Part shown: in pieces, positions 1,472 through 60,856 of the stretch
How positions within the stretch are numbered: the stretch's first letter is position 1
Layout of the letters: every line of letters begins with the position of its first letter
Virus record (IMG/VR): IMGVR_UViG_3300020477_001008
Coordinates: 124,001-188,000 of that record
Direction: 5' to 3' (one strand)
DNA: 64,000 nucleotides
Made by a program: the position numbers and the translations under genes
The notes under the pieces: model-generated
The model's input: the letters and a program-made list of their open reading frames with translations, nothing else
Database searches by the model: none
Told to the model about the DNA's origin: nothing

Positions 1472-1897
1472 CTATAATTTAACGTCTATGCCCATAGAAC
1501 GTGCCTGTCCACTTACAATTTTAACAGCGGCTTCAAGATCGTGTGCATTTAAGTCTTCCATCTTTTCTTTAGCTATATCTTCTACTTGAGCTTTAGTTAA
1601 TGTTGCAATTCTTGATCTACCAGGAGTTCTAGAACCTTTTTTCAGCTTTAATTTTTCTCTAATTAAAAAAGATGTAGGTGGTTGTTTTGTAATAAATTTA
1701 AAACTTTTATCTTTAAAAACAGTGATAATGACAGGTATAACTTTACCCATTTTATCTTTAGTTTTATCATTAAATTGTTTACAAAAGTCCATTATGTTAA
1801 CACCTTTTTGACCTAGTGCTGGACCTACTGGTGGAGCTGGATTGGCCTTGCCTGCTTCTATCTGTAATTTTAGCATTCCTGCTATTTCTTTTGCCAT
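1472..1897 (-). CDS. rplK: 50S ribosomal protein uL11
   Basis: [40 protein letters not shown] and G.ARSMGI motifs; true start MAKE at 1897 with SD AAGGA (the ORF track start at 1948 is upstream). Confidence 0.97.
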
Positions 1898-1919
1898 ATA
1901 ATCCTTTGTTGCGACAAAG

Positions 1920-1968: not shown

Positions 1969-2355
1969 CTAAGGTTTATCAGGCATTAATCCGCCTTGCT
2001 TCCAACCTATTTCTTCTACTGCTTTTATACGACCACAGTTAGCACAAATAGTTTTTAAATTGTTCCAACTAGCATTTTTTAAATTACCATCTATATGATA
2101 AACATCCATTTGTGCAGGATGTTTAGATTTAAATGCACATTTTTCACATATAGACTTTTTTCTATAACCAGCTTTTTCCCAAGAGCTTTTAAAACCAGTC
2201 TTTAATCCTAGACCTTCTTTAATACATTGGTCACACTTACTACGATAGTAGATTTTACCTTTTCTTTTGTAGTTAAAGGCACTCGGCCTCTGTTTACATT
2301 TAGAGCATAAGGGTCTTACGTGCTTTATTTCACTGGTGTCGTTTATATCTTCCAT
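1969..2355 (-). CDS. Zn-finger / HNH-like protein
   Basis: Three CxxC pairs plus HIDGN...NL.T.CANC, HNH-like but lacking the last His; TAAATA-N6-ATG. Confidence 0.6.
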
Positions 2356-2489
2356 ATATTGTATTTAATACCTTTAAAGGCGATCTTGAATAGGGTACTT
2401 TTTGCAGAAATACAATAAATATAAGCATTAACATAGGACTAGTTTATATTATTAATATAACAGAATATAAGCAGGGAGGATAATAGATT

Positions 2490-5400
2490 ATGCCAACATT
2501 AGTATCACCAGGTGTATCAGTTTCAGTAACTGATGAATCAATGTATGCTCCAGCTGGCCAAGGTACAGTACCACTAGTAGTAGTTGCGACTGCAGAGAAT
2601 AAAACAGATCCAAGTACTAGTAATATAGCAATAGGTACAACTTCGGCAAATGCAGGAAAACCATACCTTGTAACATCACAAAGAGAACTGGTTACAACCT
2701 TTGGCGAACCTAAGTTTCAATCACTAGCTGGAGTACAGCTAAATGGTGATGAAAGAAACGAATACGGTTTGCTATCAACATATTCATATTTAGGTATCTC
2801 AAACAGAGCTTATGTAGTAAGAGCTAACGTGGATTTAGCAGAGCTAGAAGGAACATCAACAGCTCCTAAATTAGCCCCGGCAAATGGCACATATTGGTTA
2901 GATACTGCAGAGACAGATTGGGGTATATTTACAGCTAACACTACGTCAAGTGCGTGGGAAAAGCTAACACCAACAGTATTAACAGACACACCAGGAGCAG
3001 GTGGAAGTAGAGTAAACAATACAGCAGACAAAGATCCAGTAACAACATATGGTCAAGATAATGACTATGTTTTAGTTGCATCGGCATCTCCAGCCAAGTT
3101 ATGGCAGAAGATTTCAGGAACTTGGGAAGTTGTAGGTTCACCATCTTGGAAGTCAGCAACAAGTGCCAACACATATATACAGCCAGGCACAGGCACAGCG
3201 CCAACAGTAGCGGCATCAGGTGCATATAGAGACGTTTGGTTAAAATCAACACCAGGCGGACAAGGTGCTAATATAGCCGTTAAATCATACTCAACATCAA
3301 CAGCAAAATGGACTTCATTGTCAGCTAACTTGTATTCAAGAGACGACGCGGCAACAGCCACTGAAGGTTCATCATTAGCACAGAACGATGTTTATGTACA
3401 ATTTGACGACTTTGATGACGGTAATATTGCGGCACAGTTAGAAGCAACATTTACTTCTACAGCGGCAACTTTATCATCAGTAGCTTTTGGTAAAACATCA
3501 ATTGAACAATATAACACAGCGGCAAGTAAAACACCGGAAATTATGTACACTCTAAAAATTAGAGGTTCAGGAACAGAATCATCAATCACAGGTACAGCAA
3601 TGGCTTTAATTGGTGGAGTTCCAGGTGTAGATTTAGCGGCAACTAAAACAGCTATCAACTTTGAGCTTAACGGTTACGACTTTAACGTTACAGCGGCAGG
3701 TGGTGCAGGTTCACACGTTACGTTAGCAGAGATTGTTACATCAATTAATAACGGTCAAGCAAACACAGGTAACGTAGTAGCTTCAATTGATTATAGAAGT
3801 GCAACAGATCAAAGATTAAATTTAACAAGAGCAGGTGGTTACGAAATTTACTTACAAGACGGAACAGATGCAGGAACAGTAGTAGGTATTCAAACTGCTA
3901 ACCTAGGTTTTGTAGATAACACTTCAACAGGTTCAACAGCATTTAAACATTTTTCATTATGGTCAGATGCAACGTATGAAGCAAGTGATTCAACACCTAC
4001 AAGCTCACCGGTAGATGGAACATTATGGTACAAATCAACACAAGATGCAGATATCTATATTGCTGAAAACGATGGCGGAACAATGAAATGGAAAGCTTAC
4101 GTAAACAGTAAAGATGTTGCTCCAACAGGATCAACAGCATCAGGTGGTTTAAGAGACTTACAAATTGTTTCAGCAGAACCAACAAAACAATCAGATGGTA
4201 CAGCTTTAGCTAACGGCGATATTTGGATTGATTCAGATGAATTAGATTCATATCCAAAAATTTACAAATATAATTCAGGTACAAGTAAATGGGTATTGTT
4301 AGACAATACTGATCAAAGTACAGCAGACGGAGTTATTTTTGCAGACGCAGTTGGTAATCCGGGCGGTGCAGATCAAGATGCTCAAGGATGGGGATCAAAC
4401 TATACAGCTTTCCATTCAGACGCAACTGATCCAGCAACAGCACCAGCTGGTATCTTATTGTTTAATACAAGATTATCAGGTTACAATGTTAAGAAGTATA
4501 CAGTAAATTATACTTACAACAGTACAAACAACGGTAATGTATGGGTTTCAACATCTGGATTAAGAACAGATGGTAGTCCATATATGGGAAGAGCGGCACA
4601 AAGAAATACAGTAGTAACTTCAATGCAGTCAGCTCTTGCAAGTAACGAAGAAATTAGAGCAGAGTCAAGATTCTTTAATATTATAACGGCACCTGGATAT
4701 CCAGAAATGGTCGATGAGATGATTACTCTATCTACTGATAGAAAACAAACAGCTTTCGTACTTGCTGACACACCATTTAGATTAAAACCAAGCGGAACAA
4801 CAGTTCAAGCTTGGGCAACTAACTCGAACAATGCGGCTACAAACGGTGAAGATGGTTTAACATCAGCTTCTCCATATGCGGCAGTTTATTATCCATCAGG
4901 TTATTCAACTGACTTGGCAGGTAGTAACGTAGTAGTTCCACCATCGCATATTGCGTTAAGAACTCTTGCATTTAACGATCAAGTTGCTTATCCTTGGTTT
5001 GCTCCAGCAGGTTTCACTAGAGGTTTAGTAGGTAACTCAACTTCAGTTGGTTACGTTACTGGCGAAGGTGAATTCCAAGCTGTAACATTATCAGAAGGTC
5101 AAAGAGACACTATGTACGCAAACAAAGTTAATCCGATTGCGTTTATTCCAAACAGAGGATTAGTTGTATTTGGTCAAAAGACTTTAAGTTCAACTGCATC
5201 TGCAATGGATAGAATTAACGTAGCTAGATTGATTGTGTACTTAAGATATCATTTAGACTTAATTGCTAAACCGTTCTTGTTTGAACCAAATGATAGAATT
5301 ACTAGAGATCAAGTAACAGACACGTTTAACAGATTCTTAGAAGATCTAACATCGAAAAGAGCTTTGTTTGACTTCTTAGTAGTTTGTGACGAAACTAATA

Positions 5401-5525
5401 ACACTGGCACTAGAATTGATAAGAATGAATTATGGATTGATATTGCAATACAACCAGTAAAAGCAGTAGAATTCATTTACATTCCATTACGTATCAAAAA
5501 TACTGGTGAAAGTTTAACAAGTTAA
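2490..5525 (+). CDS. contractile tail sheath protein (gp18-like)
   Basis: N-terminal LVSPGVSVSVTDES; C-terminal WFAPAGFTRG, NKVNPI, VVFGQKTL, DRINVARL, FLFEPND and IQPVKAVEFIYIP. Confidence 0.97.
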   Translation: MPTLVSPGVSVSVTDESMYAPAGQGTVPLVVVATAENKTDPSTSNIAIGTTSANAGKPYLVTSQRELVTTFGEPKFQSLAGVQLNGDERNEYGLLSTYSYLGISNRAYVVRANVDLAELEGTSTAPKLAPANGTYWLDTAETDWGIFTANTTSSAWEKLTPTVLTDTPGAGGSRVNNTADKDPVTTYGQDNDYVLVASASPAKLWQKISGTWEVVGSPSWKSATSANTYIQPGTGTAPTVAASGAYRDVWLKSTPGGQGANIAVKSYSTSTAKWTSLSANLYSRDDAATATEGSSLAQNDVYVQFDDFDDGNIAAQLEATFTSTAATLSSVAFGKTSIEQYNTAASKTPEIMYTLKIRGSGTESSITGTAMALIGGVPGVDLAATKTAINFELNGYDFNVTAAGGAGSHVTLAEIVTSINNGQANTGNVVASIDYRSATDQRLNLTRAGGYEIYLQDGTDAGTVVGIQTANLGFVDNTSTGSTAFKHFSLWSDATYEASDSTPTSSPVDGTLWYKSTQDADIYIAENDGGTMKWKAYVNSKDVAPTGSTASGGLRDLQIVSAEPTKQSDGTALANGDIWIDSDELDSYPKIYKYNSGTSKWVLLDNTDQSTADGVIFADAVGNPGGADQDAQGWGSNYTAFHSDATDPATAPAGILLFNTRLSGYNVKKYTVNYTYNSTNNGNVWVSTSGLRTDGSPYMGRAAQRNTVVTSMQSALASNEEIRAESRFFNIITAPGYPEMVDEMITLSTDRKQTAFVLADTPFRLKPSGTTVQAWATNSNNAATNGEDGLTSASPYAAVYYPSGYSTDLAGSNVVVPPSHIALRTLAFNDQVAYPWFAPAGFTRGLVGNSTSVGYVTGEGEFQAVTLSEGQRDTMYANKVNPIAFIPNRGLVVFGQKTLSSTASAMDRINVARLIVYLRYHLDLIAKPFLFEPNDRITRDQVTDTFNRFLEDLTSKRALFDFLVVCDETNNTGTRIDKNELWIDIAIQPVKAVEFIYIPLRIKNTGESLTS

Positions 5526-5637: not shown

Positions 5638-6234
5638 ATGGCAACACTTTCAAAATTTGGTGTACCGATAGACGGATCAACAGGACGTGGTGGTATCTTA
5701 CAACCTAAATTAAAATATAGATTTAGAGTTAGATTCACAGGTTTTGGATCTGTAGGACAATCTCCATTGCAACTTACACAACAAGTGATGAACATAACTA
5801 GACCTAAAGTTTCTCACGAGGAAGTACCTATTCACTCATATAACTCAATCGCTTATATGCAAGGTAAACATACTTGGGAAGCTATCAACATTACATTACG
5901 TGATGATATTAATAATAATATTTCAAAACTAGTTGGTGGACAAGTACAGAAACAAATGAACCACTTTGAACAAACTTCTGCAATATCAGGTTCAAGATAT
6001 AAATTTGGCACTAAGATTGAAATCTTAGATGGTACAAATAATACTGAACTAGAGCAGTGGGATTTAGAGGGTTGTTTCTTGCAAAACGTTGATTACTCAG
6101 ACGGTGACTACGCAGTATCAGAACCAGTTCAAGTTATCTTGACGCTGAAATATGATAATGCTATTCATACAGCACCAGGTGATACAATATTCCCATTCAG
6201 TTCGCTTTCGGCTTTTAGTGGCTCGGGAGTATAA
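5638..6234 (+). CDS. tail tube protein (gp19-like)
   Basis: Follows the sheath gene; QPKLKYRFRV, GKHTWEAINITLRDD, GCFLQNVDYS and LTLKYDNA tube-like pattern. Confidence 0.9.
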   Translation: MATLSKFGVPIDGSTGRGGILQPKLKYRFRVRFTGFGSVGQSPLQLTQQVMNITRPKVSHEEVPIHSYNSIAYMQGKHTWEAINITLRDDINNNISKLVGGQVQKQMNHFEQTSAISGSRYKFGTKIEILDGTNNTELEQWDLEGCFLQNVDYSDGDYAVSEPVQVILTLKYDNAIHTAPGDTIFPFSSLSAFSGSGV

Positions 6235-13310: not shown

Positions 13311-14915
13311 ATGGTACACAAAAGTCTAGACGGAAACCTAACAAAAAAAGCATATAGTAAGTCAAAATATAATGATAAGAAATTATTAGACTTAAAAAAA
13401 TGTGCTGACAAAGATACAGGTTATCTTTATTTTATGGAAAATTTTATGTGGATTCAACATCCTACTAAAGGACGTATGAAGTTTATACCATTTGAATACC
13501 AAGAAAGATTATTAAAAACATACAACGATAATAGATTTGCAATAGCGATGTGTGCCAGACAAACTGGTAAAACAACCTGTGCGGCAGGATTTTTATTATG
13601 GTATGCTATGTTCAATCCAGATGTTTTAATTTTAATTGCGGCACACAAATATCAAGGTGCTCAAGATATTATGCAACGTGTTAGATTTGCATATGAAGAA
13701 TGTCCTGATTATATTAGATGTGGTGTAACAAGTTATAATAAAGGATCAATGGATTTTGATAATGGTTCAAGGATTATGGCACAAACAACTACAGAAACAA
13801 CTGGTAGAGGTATGTCTTTATCTTTAGTGTATATGGATGAGTTTGCGTTTGTTGAACCACAACAAAAAGCTAGTGAGTTCTGGACTTCCTTATCTCCTAC
13901 ATTGTCAACAGGTGGTAAATGTATTATTACATCAACACCAAATAATGATGATGACGTTTTTGCAGGTATATGGAGAGGTGCTAATAAAAAAGTTGATGAA
14001 TACGGACAACCTAAAAGAGATGGTACAGGTATAAATGGCTTTAAAGCAATTAATGTACATTGGTCAGAACATCCTGATAGAGATGAAAAATGGGCTAATG
14101 ATGAACGTGCTAGAATTGGTGAAGAAAGATTTAGGCGTGAACACGATTGTGAATTTATTGCATTTGATGAAACACTAATTGATGGATTAAAACTTGTAAC
14201 ACTTGCAGGTAAAGATCCTTTATATAAATCAGGTCAAGTACGTTGGTATGAAAGGCCTAAAAAAGGTTCAACTTATGTTATAGCTTTAGATCCTAGTTTA
14301 GGTACAGGAGGTGATTATGCGGCAATACAAGTTTTTAGTGTACCAGAATTTAAACAAGTAGCTGAATGGCAACATAATAAAACAACTGTACAAGGGCAAG
14401 TTAGAACATTGTTAGCTATATTAAAAGATATAGATAGTCAATTAAAAGAACAAGGCACACCACAACCAGAAATATATTGGACTATTGAAAATAATACTTT
14501 AGGTGAAGCGGCTATTGTTGCAGTAGAAGAAATGGATGAAGCAAGATTTCCTGGATACTTTATGCACGAACCTAGACGTGCAGGACAGCAAAGAAGAGAT
14601 GTACATAAACGTAAAGGTTACAATACAACTCATAAAGCAAAATTATCAGCTTGTTCTAGGTTAAAAAATTGGGTAGAATCAGGAAAACTACAAGTTAATA
14701 GTAGGAACTTAATTAGAGAATTAAAAGTGTTTGTTGCAAAAGGAAATTCATTTGCGGCTAAATTAGGTGAAAATGATGATCTAGTTTCAGCAAGTTTATT
14801 ATGCTGTAGGCTAGTTGGATATCTATCAAAATATGACCCTATATTTGAGAAGAGTTTAGGTGAAAATGATACAGAAGATGGAGGCATATCTGGTCCAATG
14901 CCTATGATAATATAA
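13311..14915 (+). CDS. terminase large subunit (gp17-like)
   Basis: Walker A ARQTGKTT, Walker B YMDEFAF, ITSTPN, nuclease ALDPSLG and DDLV; no intein seen. Confidence 0.96.
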   Translation: MVHKSLDGNLTKKAYSKSKYNDKKLLDLKKCADKDTGYLYFMENFMWIQHPTKGRMKFIPFEYQERLLKTYNDNRFAIAMCARQTGKTTCAAGFLLWYAMFNPDVLILIAAHKYQGAQDIMQRVRFAYEECPDYIRCGVTSYNKGSMDFDNGSRIMAQTTTETTGRGMSLSLVYMDEFAFVEPQQKASEFWTSLSPTLSTGGKCIITSTPNNDDDVFAGIWRGANKKVDEYGQPKRDGTGINGFKAINVHWSEHPDRDEKWANDERARIGEERFRREHDCEFIAFDETLIDGLKLVTLAGKDPLYKSGQVRWYERPKKGSTYVIALDPSLGTGGDYAAIQVFSVPEFKQVAEWQHNKTTVQGQVRTLLAILKDIDSQLKEQGTPQPEIYWTIENNTLGEAAIVAVEEMDEARFPGYFMHEPRRAGQQRRDVHKRKGYNTTHKAKLSACSRLKNWVESGKLQVNSRNLIRELKVFVAKGNSFAAKLGENDDLVSASLLCCRLVGYLSKYDPIFEKSLGENDTEDGGISGPMPMII

Positions 14916-18164: not shown

Positions 18165-18341
18165 GTAGTGAATCGTGTTGGGGAATCAGTGTGAAATTCG
18201 CTGGCTCTACCAGGAACCGTAAAGTCGGAGTGCCAACCACTACAAGTCCGCTGTCGAATGAGGGCCTGGGAAAGTCTAGTTCTACAATGAAAAGTTAACA
18301 GTGGCGAGGCACGGCAACGTGTCATAAGGAAACTGTTAATG
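18165..18341 (+). ncRNA. cobalamin riboswitch (5' UTR) with RBS-sequestering expression platform
   Basis: Closing helix GTAGTG/CACTAC, GGGAA, T-loop GTGAAATTC, ACCGT, TGCCA; possible kissing pair CCAGG/CCTGG; TTAACAGT...ACTGTTAA stem encloses SD AAGGA and reaches the ATG; precedes a BtuB-like gene. Confidence 0.8.
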
Positions 18342-18848
18342 AATAAAACAACTGAAACGTTAGTATTATTTCTCTACTATATAGGTATTATAGCCTTGAG
18401 TAGAATAATACCACATCCACCAAACTTTACACCGGTTATTGCTATGGCAATTTTTATGCCATATATGACTCGCGATGTATATTTGGCTATGTTAGTTCCA
18501 ATTACGGCAATGTTTGTTTCAGATCTTTATTTGGGTTTGCACTCATTTATGATTTGGATTTATGGAACTATAATGTTATGTACACTTGTTAGTAGATATT
18601 TTAATTTAATAACAATGTCTATATTTGCACCAGTTATATTTTTTACAACAACTAATTTTGGTGTATGGTTAACAAGCACATTATATCCAAAAACACTAGA
18701 CGGTTTAATCTTATGTTACACGATGGCGATACCTTTTTTTAGAAACACATTATTGAGTACGATATTTTATATATTATTACTTGGAGCAATATATGAAATA
18801 GCAAAAAGGAGTTATACGTGGTTAAAAAAATATTACTATCTGCAATAA
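18339..18848 (+). CDS. DUF6580-like / ECF S-component-like membrane transporter (putative cobalamin)
   Basis: SRIIPHPPNFTPV.A.A.F motif, SDL.LG, NFGVW, Y..AIPFF.NT; multiple TM helices. Confidence 0.75.
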   Translation: MNKTTETLVLFLYYIGIIALSRIIPHPPNFTPVIAMAIFMPYMTRDVYLAMLVPITAMFVSDLYLGLHSFMIWIYGTIMLCTLVSRYFNLITMSIFAPVIFFTTTNFGVWLTSTLYPKTLDGLILCYTMAIPFFRNTLLSTIFYILLLGAIYEIAKRSYTWLKKYYYLQ

Positions 18849-20686
18849 TACTATTATGTTGGTGGCTTGTTATGACAAAGGTACAAGCTAATGAAACAGA
18901 ACAATTTAAATCAGAATCTTTTTATGAAGAAGATGGTGCGTTAGTTGTTGATATAACAATTTATTTGATTAGAGATCCAAGCACACTTACAACAAAATCA
19001 ATGAGTGTTGATTATGTAGACAAATACACAATTGAAAATACAAATAGTGTTGATACAATACAAGCAATACAAAGAGTAACAGGTTTAACAATAGTACAAT
19101 CAGGTCCAACAGGACAACAAACATCAATCTTTATGAGAGGAACAAATTCTAATCATACAATGGTTGCTATAAATGGAATACCAATTAAAGATAATTCAAC
19201 AACAGGCGGACTACACGATTTAGGACAAGACTTTATTAAACATATTACTGGAATACAAGTAGTAAAAGGTTCACAAGGAACACTATTTGGTCCAAATGCA
19301 GTTGGTGGTGTAATTAATTTTATTACAACAGACAGTTATGAAAATTCAATATCAACAACAATAGGATCAAACAATACTAAAGGTGTAACAGTAAAAATAC
19401 ACGAAGATATTGATAATCACTCAATAAGTTTAATTTTAGATGGTACAAAATCAGATGGTATATCAGTATATCCAAATGGTGCTGAAAAAGATGGATATGA
19501 TACTAAAAATATTACAGTAAACACAAATAGTAAATTTGAAAACTTTGATATAGGAACTACTATTATTAAAAGAAATAATAATTCAGATTTAGATGCATCA
19601 GGTTCTGATGATACAGATTACACATCAAATAACAAAATGAGTGTATATCAAATTTATACAAAAATAAAAAATGCACTAGGATTTAGTAATTTTACTTTTT
19701 CTAGAAGTGAATATGATAGAGAATATGTAAATGGTACAGAAATTGATGAATATGATTCAAATACGAACACTTATCTTTTTACAAATACTTTTATGTTTAA
19801 TGATTTTGATATAACGCCTGGTATTGAGTATGAACAATATGATGGTACGTTTAACAATAGAGGTTCATATACATCATCAGTTGATAAAGAAGGAGATAAC
19901 ACAGGAACATTTATTAATGGAAATTATCTAGTAAATGATAAACTTCTTTTTTCAATAGGTTTAAGAAATGATAACTCTAGTATGTTTAACAACTATAACA
20001 CTTATAGACTAGGTACTACATATGAACTAACTGATGACTTAACATTAAAAAGCAATTATTCAACAGCAGTAAAAACACCTACACTATACGAACTATATGG
20101 TGCAGACAGTTATGGTTATAATGGTAATCCTGACTTACAACCAGAAGAAGCAGAAACAATAGATATAGGTTTTGAATATCAAATAAATGATAAAATGGAT
20201 ATGGACCTTGTTTACTTTACTACTGACTTAGATAATATGATCACGTATGGTAATAGTACATATTCAAATGCAACAGGTACATCTAACAGACACGGTGCTG
20301 AATTAAAAATGAATAGTGCTATAGATGAAAACTTTTATGTAAGGTCAGGTACAACGTTTACTATTGCACAAGACAGTGATGATAAACAAGTTACTAGAAG
20401 ACCAAAATGGAATTGGTTTACAGGTATTGATTACAAGAAAGACAAAGTTACAAACACACTTGAATGGATTTATACTGGAAAGCATTTAGACATAGATTCA
20501 CAAACTTATGCTACTATTGAAAAACCAGCAGTTGATATAATTAATTTTCATTCAAAGTATGAGCTTAATGAAAGTTCAGAATTAATACTTTCTGTAAACA
20601 ATCTTACAGATGTAGATTATGAAAGACCAGATGGCTATTCGCAAGATGGTAGAAACTTCTTACTAACATTTAAAATTAAATACTAA
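18818..20686 (+). CDS. btuB: TonB-dependent outer-membrane receptor, BtuB-like (vitamin B12)
   Basis: Signal peptide; plug motif SIFMRGTNSNHTMVAINGIPI, GSQGTLFGPNAVGGVINFIT, NPDLQPEE; C-terminal NNLTD.DYE...GY...GR.F....K.KY; downstream of Cbl riboswitch. Confidence 0.85.
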   Translation: MVKKILLSAIILLCWWLVMTKVQANETEQFKSESFYEEDGALVVDITIYLIRDPSTLTTKSMSVDYVDKYTIENTNSVDTIQAIQRVTGLTIVQSGPTGQQTSIFMRGTNSNHTMVAINGIPIKDNSTTGGLHDLGQDFIKHITGIQVVKGSQGTLFGPNAVGGVINFITTDSYENSISTTIGSNNTKGVTVKIHEDIDNHSISLILDGTKSDGISVYPNGAEKDGYDTKNITVNTNSKFENFDIGTTIIKRNNNSDLDASGSDDTDYTSNNKMSVYQIYTKIKNALGFSNFTFSRSEYDREYVNGTEIDEYDSNTNTYLFTNTFMFNDFDITPGIEYEQYDGTFNNRGSYTSSVDKEGDNTGTFINGNYLVNDKLLFSIGLRNDNSSMFNNYNTYRLGTTYELTDDLTLKSNYSTAVKTPTLYELYGADSYGYNGNPDLQPEEAETIDIGFEYQINDKMDMDLVYFTTDLDNMITYGNSTYSNATGTSNRHGAELKMNSAIDENFYVRSGTTFTIAQDSDDKQVTRRPKWNWFTGIDYKKDKVTNTLEWIYTGKHLDIDSQTYATIEKPAVDIINFHSKYELNESSELILSVNNLTDVDYERPDGYSQDGRNFLLTFKIKY

Positions 20687-47293: not shown

Positions 47294-48229
47294 ATGTCAA
47301 CAAGAAATATATGGGGTATAGGACAAGATACATTAAACTTTCCATCTGATACTATTCCAGTATCAAGTATGATGAGTGATACACAAAAGAATTTAATTAA
47401 TAGTGGATTACTTGATCAAGTTGATTTTACGGATCCTTGGGGAAGAAAATCTAAAGCATATCCTGGTTTTCAAAATCCGCATAATGATACTTTAACACAA
47501 ATTGCTAATGGCTGGAATTCAAGATTATCAGTTATGCCAGATGGTTGGAATGATAGCAACTATGCCAATAGAGCAGTTGTTGATGGAAATGCATTAGGTA
47601 ATGGTTTCAGTGCTAGAAAGTTAACTGATACAGAAATTAAAGATATTGGTTTTGTTGAAGGTATATTAAAAGACTTTACATTTTTAACTAATAGACAATC
47701 TGGTATGGACATTATGGAATATGCAAATCCTAATAGTATGTGGTCAGCATTAGGAAATACAGGTACCTATGGTGCTATGGTTGGTTTACCTACCACAGCA
47801 AGTTTTCCAACTGGTATTGTAGTTCCAGGTGTAACAAATTATCTTGGTGTTGCTAGAACTATAAATGAAATTGGACAAATTTTAAATAATGTACCAACAG
47901 GTTATACTTCTGGTCCTTGTAAATGGATAGAAGATATAATGAAAGCTGTAATGAAAGGTGGTTCAATATTAGCAGATATATTGAATAAAGTACTTGACGT
48001 ATTAGGCATCATTGGATTAGTAAACTCAATACTTGGTATGATTAAAATGTTAATGGATATGATACTTGAAGATCTAAGAACATTAGGATCAGCTATTGAA
48101 AGAATGAAGCAGGCGGCTTTATCTGGATTGTTAGAAGCATTAATGAAAGACCCTTGTATGAGATACTTAATTACGGCAGGGTTGGCAGTAGCTGGTACAG
48201 TAGCAATATTAAAAACAACCTCTCTATAA
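47294..48229 (+). CDS. hypothetical protein downstream of PAAR, hydrophobic helical C-terminus
   Basis: 311 aa, SD AGGAGG; long amphipathic/hydrophobic C-terminal helices. Confidence 0.75.
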   Translation: MSTRNIWGIGQDTLNFPSDTIPVSSMMSDTQKNLINSGLLDQVDFTDPWGRKSKAYPGFQNPHNDTLTQIANGWNSRLSVMPDGWNDSNYANRAVVDGNALGNGFSARKLTDTEIKDIGFVEGILKDFTFLTNRQSGMDIMEYANPNSMWSALGNTGTYGAMVGLPTTASFPTGIVVPGVTNYLGVARTINEIGQILNNVPTGYTSGPCKWIEDIMKAVMKGGSILADILNKVLDVLGIIGLVNSILGMIKMLMDMILEDLRTLGSAIERMKQAALSGLLEALMKDPCMRYLITAGLAVAGTVAILKTTSL

Positions 48230-48269
48230 TTTTTTCTTGTTTTTTCTAAAAATTCGTGTATAATTAACA

Positions 48270-48514
48270 GACAACGTTGAAGTTATCGTAATAGATTATA
48301 TGGACGTGGGGGCAGTACCCACCACCTCCACCATTAAGTTAAAAAGTTTTATGGGGGTGAACTAGGATCGACAGTAATTCAAAGGGTAATGGAGTTGTCC
48401 GGATGGAAGCTCGGTTAACGCGACAAACTTATAAATGCAGATGAAAATCTAGCACTTGCGGCCTAATTCGTTAGGCTAACGGGGTCCGGGGCACCTGGCA
48501 ACAGAACGCCCCAC
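48270..48514 (+). ncRNA. ssrA: circularly permuted (two-piece) tmRNA, alphaproteobacterial type
   Basis: Acceptor piece with T-arm GTGGG-GGCAGTA-CCCAC and CACCTCCA-CCA (ends 48333); 19-nt intervening segment; coding piece starts GGGGGTG at 48353 (G3:U70 pair) with GGATCGAC; tag gca gat gaa aat cta gca ctt gcg gcc taa = ADENLALAA (48437-48466); GGCAACAGAA; 5' end approximate. Confidence 0.93.
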
Positions 48515-48521
48515 TTGTATT

Positions 48522-48800: not shown

Positions 48801-49180
48801 TGGCAGAAGTACATAAACATTTGATAATCAGAGCTGAAACTAACAAAACACCAACTGATCCAGCTTGGGCTCATCAGTGGTTAACAAAGTTAGTAAAGAA
48901 AATAGGAATGAAAATTTGTCAAGGTCCTATTACTGCTTATGTTAATGTACCTGGCAATAAAGGATTAACAGGTTTAGTAGTTATTGAAACAAGCCATATT
49001 GCTTTGCATTGTTGGGATGAAGATGAGCCAGGATTGTTACAACTTGATGTTTACACTTGTGGACCGTTAGATGAACAAATTATTTTTAATGAACTAAAAC
49101 AATTTGATCCTGTTTGTGTAGAATACAAATACCTTGATAGAAAAAGAAATTTAAAAGAAATAGATGTCAATAAAAAATAA
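48800..49180 (+). CDS. speD: S-adenosylmethionine decarboxylase proenzyme (SpeD/SpeH-like)
   Basis: HLII.AE, GLTGLVVIETSHIALH.W, LDVYTCG; likely start MAEVH at 48800. Confidence 0.88.
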   Translation: MAEVHKHLIIRAETNKTPTDPAWAHQWLTKLVKKIGMKICQGPITAYVNVPGNKGLTGLVVIETSHIALHCWDEDEPGLLQLDVYTCGPLDEQIIFNELKQFDPVCVEYKYLDRKRNLKEIDVNKK

Positions 49181-49568
49181 AATAGACAATTGGGGAAAAC
49201 AATTATCAGTATTAGAAGGTATAGATAGATTACAATATCTAGTTGACCTAGCAGATAAAGAAACTTCATTGGCTAGTGATAAAAGAATAAATGCAAATAT
49301 GATACCTGGATGTGTATCTCAAATTTGGGTAGATGTTAGATTAGAAGATAATAAAGTTATTGCAGATTATGATTCAGATGCAATGATAACAAAAGGAATT
49401 ACAAGTGTAGTATGTGATTGCTTTACAGGTGCTACAAAAGAAGAAGTTAGCAATATAGTTGTAGAAGACTTTGAAAATTTAAATATTAAGCAATTATTAA
49501 CAGCACAACGACAAAATGGTTTAGGAAACCTGATCAATACAGTCATAAACAAGTCCCAGAAGTTATAA
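49164..49568 (+). CDS. sufE: cysteine desulfuration protein SufE
   Basis: DRLQYLVDL, catalytic IPGCVSQIW, DSDAMITKG and R.NGL. Confidence 0.9.
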   Translation: MSIKNKIDNWGKQLSVLEGIDRLQYLVDLADKETSLASDKRINANMIPGCVSQIWVDVRLEDNKVIADYDSDAMITKGITSVVCDCFTGATKEEVSNIVVEDFENLNIKQLLTAQRQNGLGNLINTVINKSQKL

Positions 49569-49607
49569 TAGTAGTTAAGTTTCTATTAACTACCCTTTAA
49601 ATACAAA

Positions 49608-50069
49608 GTGTCAAGCAGTAAGAGAGGCATAACCGCAATCTTCGTAGCATTAATGTTACTCATTGCAACTATACCTTTGAATCTTCATTCCAAGGCTAGT
49701 GCAAGTTCTGACAATTTTATCATAGATTTTAGAATTAATGTTTCGTATGGATTAGGTTGGCGAGTAGATACTCCAGATCCAATGACAATTATACCAGGTA
49801 AAGAATACAAAGTTAATTTAATGGCAGTAAATGATATGGATTCTACTAAAATTGCTGAAATTATGTATGGGTATTTGCCCCCTGAGTTTGCAAGATATTT
49901 TTTATTAGTAGAATGTTTTTGTTATGATACTATTAAATTAAAAGCAAAAAGAATAATTGAATTGCCAGTTGTTTTTATTATTGATCCAGCTATATTAAAA
50001 GATAGAAAATTTAGGAAAGATAAAAATATAACAATAAGATTCAATTTCTACCCACAGATAAAACGTTGA
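49608..50069 (+). CDS. cytochrome c oxidase copper chaperone CtaG/Cox11-like
   Basis: N-terminal TM anchor, Cu-binding ECFCY motif, LPVVFIIDP; GTG start. Confidence 0.72.
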   Translation: MSSSKRGITAIFVALMLLIATIPLNLHSKASASSDNFIIDFRINVSYGLGWRVDTPDPMTIIPGKEYKVNLMAVNDMDSTKIAEIMYGYLPPEFARYFLLVECFCYDTIKLKAKRIIELPVVFIIDPAILKDRKFRKDKNITIRFNFYPQIKR

Positions 50070-50094
50070 CTAAAACATAATTATATCATATAAT
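50066..50094 (+). promoter_or_regulatory. sigma70 promoter of the rnpB-tRNA-Ser transcript
   Basis: TTGACT(50066-71)-N17-TATAAT(50089-94), RNA starting at about 50101. Confidence 0.8.
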
Positions 50095-50100
50095 AGTTTT

Positions 50101-50260
50101 AATGAGTGTAATCGGACTATCGCTGGTAACAGAGGAAAGTCAGGACACAGGTGGATATGTGCAAGTCCAAATAGAGTGTTAACAACCACCGGGACACAGG
50201 GTAGGACGCAAAGGTAGATGATAGTCTAAAACAGAATCCTGCTTACGGATTATACTCATT
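50101..50260 (+). ncRNA. rnpB: minimal RNase P RNA (about 160 nt)
   Basis: P1 AATGAGTGTAATC/GATTATACTCATT; P2 GGACTATC/GATAGTCT; CR-I GAGGAAAGTC; CR-IV TAGATGAT; CR-V AAACAGAATCCTGCTTA; P4 with bulged U and compensatory CAGG/CCTG. Confidence 0.88.
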
Positions 50261-50268
50261 ACTAACCC

Positions 50269-50358
50269 GGAAGGGTGGCTGAGTGGTTGAAAGCACCGGT
50301 CTTGAAAACCGGCAAAGGCGCAAGTCTTTCGTGAGTTCGAATCTCACCCCTTCCGCCA
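50269..50358 (+). tRNA. tRNA-Ser(TGA)
   Basis: Cloverleaf GGAAGGG...CCCTTCC-G-CCA, anticodon arm CCGGT-CTTGAAA-ACCGG, long variable arm, TTCGAAT. Confidence 0.97.
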
Positions 50359-50380
50359 GTTAAATGAAAGAAAAAGAAAA

Positions 50381-50620
50381 ATGGAAGATAATGATACAAA
50401 ATTAAATGATGCTTATAACGTAATTTTTAAGCAAGTAGAGAAATTAACTAAAGATGGAGTAGAGCCTGTTATTATTGCTGGAACATTATTAGCTCAAGCA
50501 CTTAGGTTATACAGAACAGTATTATCAGAACCAGATTTTGAAAAAATGATGGATAGTGTCTTTGGTAGACTTGATGAAATTGAACCATATGGTCCAACTG
50601 ATAAAACTTTGCTTCACTAA
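50381..50620 (+). CDS. hypothetical protein
   Basis: 79 aa helical ORF. Confidence 0.7.
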   Translation: MEDNDTKLNDAYNVIFKQVEKLTKDGVEPVIIAGTLLAQALRLYRTVLSEPDFEKMMDSVFGRLDEIEPYGPTDKTLLH

Positions 50621-50645
50621 ATATGTATAAAATAGAAATAAAAAT

Positions 50646-51005
50646 ATGACCTATTATGTTAATCAAGCCTGTGTAATGTGTAAACACACCGATTGCGTGG
50701 AAGTTTGTCCAGTAGATTGTTTTTACGAAGGTGAAAATTTTTTAGCAATTAATCCAGATGAATGTATAGACTGTGGAGTTTGTGAACCAGAATGCCCAGT
50801 TGATGCAATTAAACCTGACACACACGATGAACCAGACAAAGACAAATGGATAGAAATTAATAAAAAGTATTCAAGTGGACCAAACAGATGGCCAGTATTA
50901 ACAAAAATGATTGAAGCATTAGAAACAGCAGAAGAATATGCAACTAAAACAGATAAAATAAATTTATTATCAGAAAAACCTGGACCAGGAGATGAAGGAC
51001 GATGA
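50646..51005 (+). CDS. fdxA: 7Fe ferredoxin FdxA ([3Fe-4S]/[4Fe-4S])
   Basis: MTYYV...[43 protein letters not shown]. Confidence 0.95.
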
Positions 51006-53136: not shown

Positions 53137-53562
53137 ATGTACGAATATAGATGTAAAATATTAAAAATCATTGACGGGGATACTGTTGATGTTGATATAG
53201 ATTTAGGTTTTGGAGTATGGATGCACAAGGAACGTGTTAGATTGTTTGGCATTGATACTCCTGAGTCTAGGACTAGAGATAAAGAAGAAAAGAAATACGG
53301 TTTACTATCCAAAAAATTTATACAAGAAAGATATCCAGTAGGATCAAATGCAATATTAATAACGCATAAAGACGCAACTGGAAAGTTTGGACGTATATTG
53401 GGTGAGCTAAAATATAATAATACTACAATTAATAAGAAAATGATACTTGAAGGTTATGCAGTTGCTTATCACGGACAATCAAAAGAAGATGTTGAAGCAG
53501 AACATTTAAAAAATAGAAAAAAGTTGGATAAAAAAATAAGCAAATTTACTAAAGTAAAATGA
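53137..53562 (+). CDS. thermonuclease (SNase-like)
   Basis: IIDGDTVDV.IDLGF, RVRLFGIDTPESRT, GKFGRILG and GYAV.Y.G. Confidence 0.92.
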   Translation: MYEYRCKILKIIDGDTVDVDIDLGFGVWMHKERVRLFGIDTPESRTRDKEEKKYGLLSKKFIQERYPVGSNAILITHKDATGKFGRILGELKYNNTTINKKMILEGYAVAYHGQSKEDVEAEHLKNRKKLDKKISKFTKVK

Positions 53563-56058: not shown

Positions 56059-56264
56059 AAACCAGGAAAGAGAGAATAAAAAAAATTGACATCAACGATG
56101 AAATTAGTGTACAATTAAAAGAAGTAAAAAAAACTATTGATATGGAAGGCATTAATCAAAGAACTCAAAAAACACTGGCACTCAATCACGGAGCAAAAGG
56201 TGAGACAGTAATATCCAAGGCTGACAAAGAATGGTTAGATCAGAAATCAGATAATAATAAATGA
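56046..56264 (+). other. -1 frame extension of the 54361 gene (72 open codons) or small ORF 56142..56264
   Basis: Frame open from 56046 to TGA 56262-64, overlapping the clpX ATG. Confidence 0.45.
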
Positions 56265-57553
56265 GCGATAAAGAGATTAAAATGAAATGCTCGTTCTGTG
56301 AAAAGACTAGAGCCGAATCACATAAATTAATAGCAGGACCTAAAGAAACATTTATTTGCGATGAATGTGTAAAACTTTGCCACGATATTTTAAAAGAAGG
56401 AACAATTGAAAACGAAACAAAAGAGTTTGCTATTCCTGATCCAAAAAAATTACACGGATATTTAAATGAACACGTAATTGGTCAAGATAGAGCAAAGAAA
56501 ATTGTTAGTGTAGCAGTTTATAACCATTATAAAAGAATTGTTAATAATTTAATTAAAGAAGATGGGCAAGACGAAATTGAAAAATCTAATGTTATGATGT
56601 TAGGACCATCAGGTGTTGGAAAAACACTTTTAGCTAAAAAGGTTGCTGAATACGTAAATGTACCATTTGCTATTGCTGATGCAACAACAATAACAGAATC
56701 AGGTTATGTAGGTGATGACGTAGAGAATATTGTAACAAGATTATTGCAACAAGCAGACTTTAATGTTGAAAAAGCTGAACGTGGAATTATATACATTGAT
56801 GAAATAGATAAAAAAGCAAAAAAAGGTGAGAACGTATCAATTACTAGAGATGTATCTGGTGAAGGTGTACAACAAGCTTTATTAAAAATTATTGAAGGAA
56901 CAACTGTTAGAGTTCCGCCACAAGGTGGAAGAAAACATCCTGGTGCAGAAATGATTGAAGTTGATACATCAAATATATTGTTTATAGTTGGTGGAGCATT
57001 TGTTGGTATAGATAAAGTTATTAATAAAAGGGCTAATAAGTCAGCAGGTATTGGATTTAATCAACGAGTAGAAACTGTTGATACAGGATTTGATGAATGC
57101 GAACCAGATGATTTAATTAAGTATGGATTAATACCTGAACTTGTTGGAAGGTTACCAGTTATAGTAGGTTGTCATAATTTAGATAAAAAAGATTTAAAAG
57201 CAATTATGCTTGATGTAAAAAATTCATTGATTAAACAATCTCAACGTTTATTTAAAATGGAAAATGTAAATTTAATTATAACTGAAGATGCAGTAGATTA
57301 TGTAGTAGATGAAGCACACGAAAAGAAATTAGGTGCTAGAGGATTAAAATCTGTGTTAGAAAAAGGTTTATTAGAAATACAATATGACTTACCAGAATAC
57401 AGAGATGGTGGAGTTAGTGAAATTACAGTTACAGAAAAAACGCTCAAAGGAGAAAAACCGATGCTCACTTATGAGTTTGATGCTAAAGATATAAAAGCTA
57501 AAGAAACAAAAAAAGGGAAAAAGGAAGATAACGGTACAACAGGAAAAGAATGA
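56261..57553 (+). CDS. clpX: ATP-dependent Clp protease ATP-binding subunit ClpX
   Basis: Zn domain CSFC...ICDEC; Walker A GPSGVGKT; pore loop GYVG; IDEIDK; RDVSGEGVQ; RKH loop; IGF loop (AGIGF). Confidence 0.97.
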
Positions 57554-58104
57554 AACAAAGATATAGTAATTACGAGTATCAAAAAAAGAAAGCATTAATT
57601 AACGAGAATATTAGAAGTAAAGAAGTTCGTTTAATATTAGAATCATCACAAGAAATAGTAACTACACAAGAAGCATTAAGATTATCTAGAGAGCAAGATT
57701 TAGATCTAGTTTGTGTTAGCACAAAATCAAATCCACCTATATGTAAAATTATGGATTATGGGAAACATCTATATGAACAAAAAAAGAAACAAAAAATTGC
57801 TGATAAAAAACAAAGAGAAGCTATTGTGGATACAAAAGAAATCCAGTTTAGACCAGCAACTGGAATTGGAGATCTTAAAGTAAAAGCTAAAAAGGTACAA
57901 GAGTTTATAGATGATGGAGATAAGGTAAAATTAGTAATGAAATTGCGTGGCAGGGAAAATGCTATGAAGGATTTTGCTATGGAACAATTCAAAAAATTTG
58001 TTGATTTAATTGAGAATTATGACTACGATTATAGGCCAAATATACAGGGAAATAAAATACTTGCAATTTTAAAGAAAGGTGTTATAATAAAGAACAATGA
58101 GTGA
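57550..58104 (+). CDS. infC: translation initiation factor IF3
   Basis: INENIR..EVRLI, DLDLV.VS....[28 protein letters not shown]....RGRE. Confidence 0.95.
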
Positions 58105-58453
58105 TAAACCAAGGAAAAAATACGACATCAAAAATTTCTCTAATTTTGGGAAATTTGAGCAAAAGCGAGATCGAAGACCAAGACGTGAGCCAGATCCACC
58201 TGGTTTAGCAGTTACAGTTCACGGCGACGATGTAATGAAAGCTTATAGAAGGCTTAAAAAGAAACTAATGAAAGATAACCTTATGGATACAATAAGGGAT
58301 AAAAGATATTACAAAAAGCCAAGTGAAATTAGACAAGAAAAATTAAAAGTGCAAAGAAGGAATATGCAAAAAGCTCAAAGAGATAGAGCTATGCAATATG
58401 GTATAAGATATAAAAACTATGATCCTAGCACAGCCAAAACACGTGGCTATTAA
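58097..58453 (+). CDS. rpsU: 30S ribosomal protein bS21 with N- and C-terminal extensions
   Basis: VTVHGDDVMKAYRRLKKKL...RYYKKPSE.R core; own promoter TTGCAA-N16-TGn-TATAAT-N8-ATG. Confidence 0.85.
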   Translation: MSDKPRKKYDIKNFSNFGKFEQKRDRRPRREPDPPGLAVTVHGDDVMKAYRRLKKKLMKDNLMDTIRDKRYYKKPSEIRQEKLKVQRRNMQKAQRDRAMQYGIRYKNYDPSTAKTRGY

Positions 58454-58934: not shown

Positions 58935-59010
58935 GGGCGGTTAGCTCAGTTGGTAGAGCATCTCGTTTACACCGAGGGGGTCAAAGGTTCGAGTCCTTTA
59001 CTGCCCACCA
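58935..59010 (+). tRNA. tRNA-Val(TAC)
   Basis: GGGCGGT...ACTGCCC-A-CCA; anticodon loop TTTACAC; TTCGAGT. Confidence 0.97.
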
Positions 59011-59014
59011 TTAC

Positions 59015-59090
59015 GGAGTATTAGTGTAGCGGTTAACACGTCGCCCTGTCACGGCGAAGACCACGGGTTCGAATCCCGTATACTCCGCCA
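59015..59090 (+). tRNA. tRNA-Asp(GTC)
   Basis: GGAGTAT...ATACTCC-G-CCA; anticodon arm TCGCC-CTGTCAC-GGCGA. Confidence 0.97.
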
Positions 59091-59108: not shown

Positions 59109-60314
59109 ATGCACAATATTCGAAAACAATTTCCCATATTTGATAAAACATTACCTAACGGTAAAAAATTAGTATATTTAGATAGTGCTAATTCTTCACA
59201 AAAACCGAAAAGGGTATTAGATAGATTATATGATTTTTATGCACAAGAATATAGTAGTGTTGGGAGAAGTATACACCAGTTAAGTACAGGTGCAAGTAAA
59301 TGTTTAAATGATAGTAGAGAAGCAGTTGCAAAATTTTTAAATGCTGGTTCTGTAGATGAAATTGTTTTTACTAAAAGTGCCACAGAAGCTATTAATACGA
59401 TTGCAGAAAGTTTTGGCAGAACTCAACGTGATCATTATGAAATAATTTGTTCTGAATTAGAACATAATTCAAATTATCTTCCTTGGCATTTGCAAAGAGC
59501 TCATAAAAATGCAACAATTAAATTTATTCCTTTAAAAGATGATTATACATTAGATGTAGATAAGCTAGAAAGTTTAATTACTAAAAAAACTAAAATGATA
59601 GCAATAACTCATTTATCAAATGTTACTGGAGAAGTAATTAATGTTAAAAAAATATGTGAGATAGCACACAGTAAAGGAATAGCAGTTTTTGTAGATGGTA
59701 CACAAGGTGCACCACATATGAAAGTTGATGTACAAGATATTGATTGTGATTTTTATTGTATTAGTGGTCATAAAATGTACGGACCTTCAGGCGTTGGGGC
59801 TTTGTACGCCAAAGAAAAATGGTTAGATGAATTATCGCCTTTTCAAGGTGGTGGTGGAACGGTACTTGATGCAACGCAAAGTGTTATTCAATATGCAGAT
59901 GGACCAAAAAAATGGGAAGCTGGAACACACCCAGTTGCTGAAATTGTAGCATTAAAAGAAGCAATTGATTTTTATTATGATGTTGGATTTGATAATATGT
60001 TAAATCACGAAAAACAATTAGTTGAGTATTTGTATGAAAAATTAGCATCTGATAATGATATTGAGTTACTATGTGGTAATAAGCCTAATGCTGTTTTATC
60101 ATTTAATATTAAAGGAATACATCACGAAGATATGTCAATGTTTTTAGATGAATATGGTATTGCTACAAGACCAGGTCAACATTGTGCTATGTTATTCCAT
60201 AAAAGGTACAGTTTAACTGGTTCTGTTAGAGTATCATTAGGTGTATATAATACCAAAGAAGAAATGGACTTTTTCTTACAGTCTTTGGGTGAAATTAAGA
60301 AGAGATTATCCTAA
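59109..60314 (+). CDS. sufS: SufS-type cysteine desulfurase
   Basis: VYLDSA.SSQKP, ELEHNSN, PLP lysine SGHKMYGP, catalytic RPGQHCA, R.SLG.YNT.EE. Confidence 0.93.
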   Translation: MHNIRKQFPIFDKTLPNGKKLVYLDSANSSQKPKRVLDRLYDFYAQEYSSVGRSIHQLSTGASKCLNDSREAVAKFLNAGSVDEIVFTKSATEAINTIAESFGRTQRDHYEIICSELEHNSNYLPWHLQRAHKNATIKFIPLKDDYTLDVDKLESLITKKTKMIAITHLSNVTGEVINVKKICEIAHSKGIAVFVDGTQGAPHMKVDVQDIDCDFYCISGHKMYGPSGVGALYAKEKWLDELSPFQGGGGTVLDATQSVIQYADGPKKWEAGTHPVAEIVALKEAIDFYYDVGFDNMLNHEKQLVEYLYEKLASDNDIELLCGNKPNAVLSFNIKGIHHEDMSMFLDEYGIATRPGQHCAMLFHKRYSLTGSVRVSLGVYNTKEEMDFFLQSLGEIKKRLS

Positions 60315-60319
60315 TCCTA

Positions 60320-60367
60320 TTGACTTCCTGATAAGTATTTTATATAATACTGATGTACAATTAAATA
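60320..60367 (+). promoter_or_regulatory. tandem sigma70 and late promoters for rplL-sufB
   Basis: TTGACT(60320-25)-N17-TATAAT(60343-48); TAAATA 60362-67; SD AAGGA. Confidence 0.7.
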
Positions 60368-60385
60368 TAATTAATAAGGAAAACT

Positions 60386-60856
60386 ATGTCAGAAGATGAA
60401 GTAAAAAAAGCTGAAGAAACAAAGGCAGAAGAAAAGCCAGTAGAACCAAAAGCTGAAGAAACATCTAAAACTATTACAAGAAATTTAGATGCTATTGTTG
60501 AAGAACTTGGACAATTAACAGTTATGGAAGCGGCCGATCTTGCTAAAAAATTAGCTAAAGCTTGGGATATTGATTTAGATAATATGGCGGCCGGTGTTGC
60601 ACCAGCAGGTGGTGGCGCCGCGGGAGCTCCAGCAGACGCAGATGCTCCTGTAACAGTTATATTAAAAGATTTTAAAGAAGGTACTAAAATTAATGTCTTA
60701 AAAGCAATTAAGGCAATTAAAGGTTTAGGACTAATGGAATCTAAACAATTTGTAGAAGCATTACCTAAAGAAGTTGATTCAGAAATACCAAGAGATAAAG
60801 CAGAAGAAATTAAAAAACAATTGGAAGAAGTTGGCGGTAACGTTGAAATAAAATAA
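60386..60856 (+). CDS. rplL: 50S ribosomal protein bL12 (L7/L12) with N-terminal extension
   Basis: [16 protein letters not shown], Ala/Gly hinge, [34 protein letters not shown]. Confidence 0.95.

Follow-up and report, generated by a model that had tools for sequence, protein, structure and literature searches.

A complete ribosomal protein uL11 gene in the tail module of a large marine T4-like phage and its apparent SAR11-like origin

A stretch of 64,000 nucleotides (the window in the following), which comprises bases 124001-188000 of the 242,646-bp contig IMGVR_UViG_3300020477_001008, encodes a real, full-length, two-domain ribosomal protein uL11 among the virion genes of a large phage. It is rather likely that this is a working uL11, which goes back to one old capture from a SAR11-like bacterium, has been kept by large marine T4-like myophages and would supplement the ribosomes of their hosts.

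The uL11 gene and its place in the phage genome

The rplK-like coding sequence occupies positions 1472-1897 on the minus strand, with an ATG at 1897 and a TAA stop codon at 1474-1472, and codes for 141 amino acids. Both of its domains are matched over the full length of the corresponding Pfam profiles, namely Ribosomal_L11_N (PF03946; residues 9-66, E-value 1.1e-29, 102.3 bits against a cut-off of 32.9) and Ribosomal_L11 (PF00298; residues 71-139, 4.6e-26, 91.5 bits against a cut-off of 21.4). Residues 1-139 align without gaps to the Thermotoga L11 chains 1mj1 and 1mms (E-value 2e-52), which come from solved L11-RNA crystal structures, and the AlphaFold model (pLDDT 83.4) is superimposed by Foldseek on solved uL11 chains with TM-scores of 0.89-0.93 and an rmsd of 1.2-1.8 Å. 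The open reading frame, both domains, the colinearity and the predicted fold thus bear out the intact rplK that had been proposed in the first-pass annotation, and the low dN/dS values described below agree with this assignment. A version of 158 amino acids starting with TTG at 1948, which is used by some database entries, is an artefact of the ORF caller; the 141-residue start is correct, because the homologues all open with Met-Ala-Lys and are preceded by an invariant AAAGGA.

The surroundings of the gene are viral on both sides. Downstream of it along the window lie the genes of the tail sheath (2490-5525, 1011 aa), the tail tube (5638-6234) and a head-closure protein, and gp15-like and gp23-like capsid genes are found just beyond the window start on the upstream side, which agrees with the earlier placement of uL11 among virion genes and answers the suggestion that the viral nature of the contig be confirmed by its flanking genes. 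The closest relatives of the sheath are those of PA5oct-type jumbo phages, at about 40% identity, and those of Rak2-type phages and SCTP-2, at 35% (35-41% overall). A T4-type large terminase is encoded at 13311-14915, and the window also contains homologues of UvsX, UvsW and UvsY, a DnaB-like helicase and a ribonucleotide reductase. Directly upstream of uL11, on the same strand, is a Zn-ribbon/HNH-like gene (1969-2355, minus strand), which is recognized by weak HNH hits in Pfam and PHROGs, is 76-94% identical and syntenic among relatives, and may share a transcript with uL11.

The order dNMP kinase, (small ORFs), uL11, HNH-like gene, sheath and tube is repeated in more than 15 independent contigs, which come from different samples and assemblers (L002-L010, with sheaths 70-85% identical, L092, L093, L096, L110, L111, L115 and L117). 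In composition, the gene (GC 0.331, GC3 0.169) resembles the ORFs of the window (means 0.317 and 0.184). This recurring synteny and the phage-like composition contradict the host-contig chimera that the first-pass annotation had named as a refuting case. ORF and family scans detect no nusG, rplA or rplJ beside uL11 in the window, and a tblastn search with the SAR11 neighbours of the gene finds none of them beside uL11 in 11 viral loci (L110, L111, L115, L117 and L121-L127), except for rplA in L125 and L127. As its locus lacks the order secE-nusG-rplK-rplA-rplJ-rplL, the gene was filed as viral and not as cellular.

Collections of described phages contain little that is related. A megablast search of window positions 1-24000 against 50,697 phage records returns no match, and no PHROGs family matches this uL11. 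In a tblastn search of the phage collection, uL11 retrieves mostly bacterial fragments, and the only annotated phage uL11 copies are that of MaAM05 and possibly those of the Acinetobacter MD-2021a records. Downstream of uL11, at 805-1397 on the minus strand, a small ORF is present twice in tandem, as paralogues of 96 and 90 aa with 54% identity; locus L110 has three copies of it and L008-L010 have none. These ORFs have no Pfam or PHROG match, and a protein-atlas look-up gives only sub-threshold hits.

A Shine-Dalgarno box of the gene's own, which had been noted before, is confirmed by the alignment of phage loci: AAAGGA (1902-1907, minus strand), 4 nt 5' of the ATG, is unchanged in all nine aligned loci, and the bases that flank it vary. 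The accompanying claim of a separate sigma70 promoter holds only in part. The best sigma70-type site of the region, the candidate TTGACT-17-TATTAT (1948-1920, minus strand), agrees with the consensus at 10 of 12 positions and ends 22 nt ahead of the ATG, and its hexamers hold their position in the near relatives L002, L005, L007, L008 and L009, where the surrounding non-coding bases differ; among the other aligned phage loci, they are not conserved in position in L092, L094 and L096. Sites of this type are, however, as frequent in the AT-rich uL11 region as expected by chance (8 observed against 8.3 in shuffles), so that the match alone proves nothing. A regional signal scan finds no terminator-like site 3' of uL11. 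Judging from these signals, uL11 would form a transcription unit for the host polymerase, probably an early one, which runs against the late structural genes around it.

The T4 late-promoter box TATAAATA was dropped as a marker of timing, as the window has only 6 copies where 15 are expected, most of them at 5-8 nt from a start codon. Its copies all lie at gene junctions, often overlapping the preceding stop codon, at that distance from the following ATG. One copy (1443-1436) is situated between uL11 and the next ORF, which is also preceded by a strong Shine-Dalgarno sequence.

Origin, relocation and conservation of the phage uL11

Among cellular organisms, scanned with one representative per species for 185,579 bacterial and archaeal species, the best 80 of at least 553 matching stretches reach no more than 68% identity to the phage protein, the highest being from Pelagibacteraceae single-cell genomes, in which the gene neighbourhood comprises EF-Tu, secE, nusG, rplK, rplA, rplJ, rplL and rpoB. 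Marine metagenomes contain about 66 uL11 protein clusters at 75-99% identity, on contigs of up to 199,826 bp; after these, identity drops to about 70% and the matches resemble SAR11. A profile-based scan of IMG/VR yields 24 uL11 loci, out of which 17 belong to the clade of this phage, five (L121-L124 and L126) form a second viral clade with 59-65% identity to this uL11, and two (L125 and L127) have uL1 adjacent and may be PhiMa05-like or cellular.

In trees calculated with IQ-TREE (LG+C20), the phage clade has supports of 98/97, the SAR11 clade 100/97 and the two together 95/85. When the second viral clade is included, it is the sister of the first (94/88), and the viral copies as a whole are sister to Pelagibacteraceae (98/83). 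These values derive from 141 columns and from outgroups that are among the best 80 genome hits and include few other Alphaproteobacteria. The phylogeny against cellular uL11 that had been advised as a check thus unites the phage copies in one clade next to Pelagibacteraceae. Six derived residues, K47, K62, S76, G93, D120 and I127, are common to the phage and SAR11 copies only. The AT-rich composition of both groups could draw their branches together, and K47, K62 and I127 are AT-favoured changes. At three further positions SAR11 has the derived residues P53, K65 and I96 where the phage has the general bacterial residue, which implies that the phage uL11 branched off below the crown of the sampled SAR11 or stems from a side lineage. 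By these sequence comparisons, uL11 was apparently captured once, long ago, from a SAR11-like (Pelagibacterales-related) alphaproteobacterium, and the position of the two viral clades as joint sister of Pelagibacteraceae points to one old capture that was followed by relocation in phages.

A two-piece tmRNA of the alphaproteobacterial type (48221-48515, plus strand; Rfam RF01849, 152.8 bits with a gathering threshold of 50; also found by ARAGORN), with the tag peptide ADENLALAA as read by ARAGORN, independently points to an alphaproteobacterial host or donor. At 18165-20686, the window carries an AdoCbl-II (B12) riboswitch directly upstream of genes for a DUF6580 protein and a TonB-dependent receptor (Plug and beta-barrel), a set which looks like a phage-borne, riboswitch-controlled outer-membrane uptake unit. 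Since one would not expect a TonB-dependent receptor behind a B12 riboswitch in a phage of classic SAR11, the host of today may belong elsewhere among the marine Alphaproteobacteria.

The gene has a different place in the second viral clade, where two cold-shock-domain genes come before it and genes for a PTPS (QueD-like) protein and a large membrane protein come after it; the order of the two cold-shock genes and uL11 is found in L121, L122-L124 and L126. In L121 (IMGVR_UViG_3300020477_000990, 328 kb, a related huge phage from the same sample), a full-length EF-G gene lies just upstream, so that EF-G, the two cold-shock genes and a divergent uL11 stand in a row (2169-5423). Neighbourhoods of the L121 type are syntenic with 51-56 kb of the window, where the homologues are 57%, 86% and 53% identical, and this part of the window leads into an island of ClpX, IF3, bS21, tRNA, SufS, bL12 and SufB genes. 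At the slot that holds uL11 in the sister clade, the window has an SNase-like gene, and its own uL11 is 52 kb away in the tail module. The 141-residue ORF at 53137-53562 was considered as a degenerate second uL11 and rejected, as it codes for an SNase-like nuclease.

Further positions are occupied within the clade of this phage. In L094 and L095, uL11 comes just after a bL33 gene (L094:5786-6426), among genes for radical-SAM/SPASM proteins, NAD synthase and a cell-wall hydrolase, and in L092 its orientation is flipped. Related bL33 genes are found on other viral contigs of 72-124 kb (L128-L130). On the contig of the window itself, close-pattern scans of low sensitivity find neither bL33 nor EF-G. 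The distribution fits one capture and several relocations through which uL11 was always kept, and such repeated relocation with retention argues that its function would be independent of a particular operon.

Among nine phage uL11 copies, pairwise Nei-Gojobori dN/dS values range from 0.04 to 0.23 at dS values between 0.15 and saturation, which shows purifying selection in the viral lineage. No frameshifted or truncated copy is seen in about 25 phage loci. In a column comparison of 28 phage, 16 SAR11-type and 74 other bacterial copies, the columns that are invariant across the 90 cellular proteins are also invariant in every phage protein, so that the proline-rich helix N-P-x-P-P-V-G-P-A-L-G, the F-C-K lysine, the P-P hinge and the A-R-S-M-G segment are kept. 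At only two positions do all 28 phage copies have a residue that is practically missing from the 90 cellular proteins: T75 immediately follows the PP hinge between the domains, and Q131 is part of the C-terminal RNA-binding helix. Within the N-terminal domain (residues 1-71), the 28 phage copies have no phage-specific substitution. The copies of the second clade are more altered and have, for instance, GSCRSMS in place of the usual G-x-ARSMG.

Translation genes in the window and the role of uL11

Together with uL11, the window encodes two other ribosomal proteins (bS21 and bL12), IF3, the tmRNA, three tRNAs and ClpX. The first-pass annotation had recognized uL11 and bL12 and overlooked the remainder. 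The ClpX homologue (56261-57553, plus strand; Pfam zf-C4_ClpX, AAA_2 and ClpB_D2-small), whose presence in the same phage accompanies that of the tmRNA tag, has matches in marine metagenome proteins and is conserved on related phage contigs; it accompanies this phage group, since the contigs of its matches have the same lengths as those of uL11 and bL12 matches (for example 136,807, 31,027 and 11,757 bp). It heads a cluster in which it is followed by homologues of IF3 (57550-58104, plus strand; Pfam IF3_N 9.6e-27, IF3_C 2.9e-19) and of bS21 (58097-58453, plus strand; Pfam Ribosomal_S21 6.3e-11 over residues 39-88), the latter with an N-terminal extension of about 38 residues. The start of bS21 overlaps the stop of IF3 by 8 nt, right after ClpX, and the two look like a translationally coupled initiation pair. 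ARAGORN and Rfam identify tRNA-Val(tac) and tRNA-Asp(gtc) at 58935-59090 on the plus strand and tRNA-Ser(tga) at 50269-50358. A tblastn search of the phage collection with bS21 gives no match.

The rplL gene reported at 60386 is also real, since both L12 domains are detected in its product (60386-60856, plus strand, 156 aa; Pfam L12_N 5.8e-11, L12 C-terminal domain 1.6e-21), which aligns to cellular bL12. It has a 30-residue, acidic (Glu)/Lys-rich N-terminal extension and reads GLGLMES where cellular proteins have GLGLKEA, and its identity amounts to 43.5% with SAR11 bL12 and to 53-61% with a group of 120-aa marine proteins encoded outside ribosomal operons (L100 and L101); tblastn against the phage collection returns only C-terminal pieces of bacterial-type records. 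An identical copy is present on contigs of up to 311,421 bp, by which the phage genome may exceed the 242-kb IMG/VR contig. The bL12 gene is wedged between SufS and SufB genes of an iron-sulfur kit, which comprises SufE, ferredoxin, a SufS-like desulfurase and SufB (49164-51005 and 59109-62280), and the window also has genes for CtaG/Cox11, an SpeD-like decarboxylase and an aldehyde dehydrogenase (62506-63876).

The proposal that uL11 is the partner of this bL12 finds no support in position, distribution or origin. A distance of 58 kb separates the genes, which have opposite strands and belong to different modules. Only a few close relatives of the bL12 turn up, whereas uL11 occurs all over a broad phage clade, and uL11 is thus not dependent on this bL12. 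Moreover, bL12 docks on uL10 and not on uL11.

The reading that we prefer is that the phage adds a functional uL11 to its host. The gene would be transcribed from its own sigma70-type promoter by the unmodified host RNA polymerase, therefore probably early, and the protein would bind helices 43/44 of the host 23S rRNA as the host protein does, filling or replacing uL11 on host 50S subunits. A host that grows slowly and has few ribosomes would thereby gain more of them with a complete factor-binding centre. The uL11 would then be one item of a translation kit, along with IF3, bS21, bL12, tmRNA and tRNAs, rather than half of an obligate pair with bL12. What the sequences show is the identity and integrity of uL11, its viral context, its selection and its phylogeny; the timing of expression, the incorporation into ribosomes and the benefit for the phage are inferred. 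In L121, the adjacency of uL11 to EF-G, which docks at the uL11 site, counts for a working uL11. On the other side, uL11 is not known to be limiting in growing E. coli cells. Assembly does not require uL11, which joins late and can be restored to ribosomes that lack it. This fits the view of Mizuno et al. (2019, Nat Commun 10:752) that viruses prefer those ribosomal proteins that can be exchanged. The only precedent for incorporation comes from bS21 and bL12 of viruses, which become part of the 70S ribosomes of E. coli (PMC6375957).

Possible, although doubtful, is a specialised ribosome in which the phage uL11 weakens the activation of RelA/Rel or alters the recruitment of translation or hibernation factors, so that translation continues despite host shutdown. 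The fixation of T75 and Q131, the stronger alteration of the sister viral clade and the genetic links of uL11, with EF-G in L121 and with bL12, IF3 and bS21 in the window, speak for such a change. However, both fixed residues lie outside the N-terminal domain. It is this domain that is needed for RelA activation, and a mutation in its proline-rich helix causes a relaxed phenotype in E. coli. As the N-terminal domain, including this helix, is unchanged in all 28 phage copies, the sequence predicts normal support of RelA, and the blunted stringent response suggested by the first-pass annotation is left without support from the residues. A literature search for a uL11-dependent stringent response in Pelagibacter returned nothing usable. 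A broader idea, which we regard as unlikely, is that the two sister phage clades use the product of the one ancient capture with differing kits (EF-G and cold-shock proteins in one; bL12, IF3, bS21 and tmRNA in the other) to build phage-tuned ribosomes. If this were true, the GTPase-associated centre and the initiation site would be partly viral, and translation would run on in a starved, ribosome-poor, SAR11-like cell.

Quite unlikely is a role outside the ribosome, be it as an RNA chaperone or regulator of an RNA that mimics helix 43/44, or as a decoy that titrates a uL11 binder such as the methyltransferase PrmA or a defence factor. The position of the sister-clade gene behind two genes for cold-shock-domain (RNA chaperone) proteins and the movement of uL11 between genomic modules, with no fixed operon, would suit such a role; against it, conservation extends over the whole protein, including the rRNA and factor surfaces, which incorporation demands and of which a decoy needs less, and Rfam, which might not model such an element, reports no GAC-like RNA in the window. 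That uL11 is a neutral passenger is very improbable: phages do sample host DNA randomly, and a possibly mobile HNH-like gene adjoins uL11, but unused DNA would hardly combine the observed constraint across deep divergence (dN/dS 0.04-0.23), retention in two viral clades and after relocation, a fully ameliorated composition and an invariant Shine-Dalgarno box. A chimeric assembly, or a viral contig contaminated by cellular DNA, of which one is reminded by the many uL11 database matches that are filed as phage and are bacterial (Staphylococcus, Listeria and Salmonella records) and by the cell-like, uL1-adjacent loci L125 and L127, is hardly credible for the window, given the hallmark genes on both sides of uL11, the return of the same junctions in over 15 assemblies that were made independently of different samples, the lack of nusG, rplA or rplJ neighbours and the identity of at most 68% to the best 80 of at least 553 cellular matches.

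Comparison with known viral and cellular uL11 genes

Viral uL11 is already on record, in the contigs of Mizuno et al. (2019) and in the phage PhiMa05/MaAM05, which the first-pass annotation had overlooked, and the present gene extends a known kind of viral gene. That bS21 and bL12 are the ribosomal proteins commonly found in phages, as had been stated, agrees with Supplementary Table 2 of Mizuno et al. (2019; Nat Commun 10:752), where uL11 is the rarer one with 3 contigs, compared with 1310 for bS21 and 30 for bL12. The three viral contigs with Ribosomal_L11_N in that study, two of them environmental and none predicted to be temperate, have a pN/pS of 0 and are possibly from the same marine lineage as this phage; there, however, uL11 is only counted, and its context, phylogeny and co-encoded genes are not described.

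The Microcystis jumbo phage PhiMa05/MaAM05 carries uL11 with uL1, bL33, bS1, bL21 and bL27 (ISME J 2026, PMC13157829). It is likewise a jumbo phage with an annotated full-length uL11, and the MaAM05 copy is 53.6% identical to the one described here. In PhiMa05, however, uL11 stands beside uL1 with bL33 nearby, in a host-operon-like arrangement, and the genes have been traced to Vampirovibrio-like hosts (PMC13157829), whereas the window has uL11 by itself in the tail module, with SAR11 as its kin in the trees and with bS21, bL12 and IF3 in the same genome. The two are independent acquisitions. The nearest cellular relative is the uL11 of Pelagibacteraceae (SAR11), which is 66-68% identical (in the best 80 of at least 553 matches), is sister to the phage copies in the trees and has the six derived residues in common with them, and which differs in its cellular order secE-nusG-rplK-rplA-rplJ-rplL-rpoB.

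Related translation genes are known from other large phages. In pelagimyophages (HTVC008M; Zaragoza-Solas, 2020, PMC7029224), bS21 is a core gene and some members have an L12 homologue, as in the window, and the toolkit of huge phages, with IF3, N-terminally extended S21, L7/L12, EF-G and tmRNA (Al-Shayeb, 2020, PMC7162821), resembles that of the window; unlike in this phage, uL11 is not listed in PMC7029224 or PMC7162821. In a survey of marine jumbo phages, bins with more than one ribosomal protein were removed as a contamination filter (bioRxiv 10.1101/2022.01.18.476781), a rule under which a phage with three of them in 64 kb, such as this one, would have been lost, and phages of its type may have been excluded systematically.

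Compared with these systems, what is new is the definition of a large marine lineage of uL11-bearing phages, with an apparently single SAR11-like origin and a history of relocation, as well as the adjacency to EF-G in the sister clade and the co-occurrence of uL11, bS21, bL12, IF3 and tmRNA in one genome. Should the host be a relative of SAR11, the gene would offer a tractable handle on the translation of a very large phage in a tiny, slow marine cell. Viral ribosomal proteins are a small and recent category, and uL11, one of the rarest among them, is now tied to a well-defined and abundant marine lineage.
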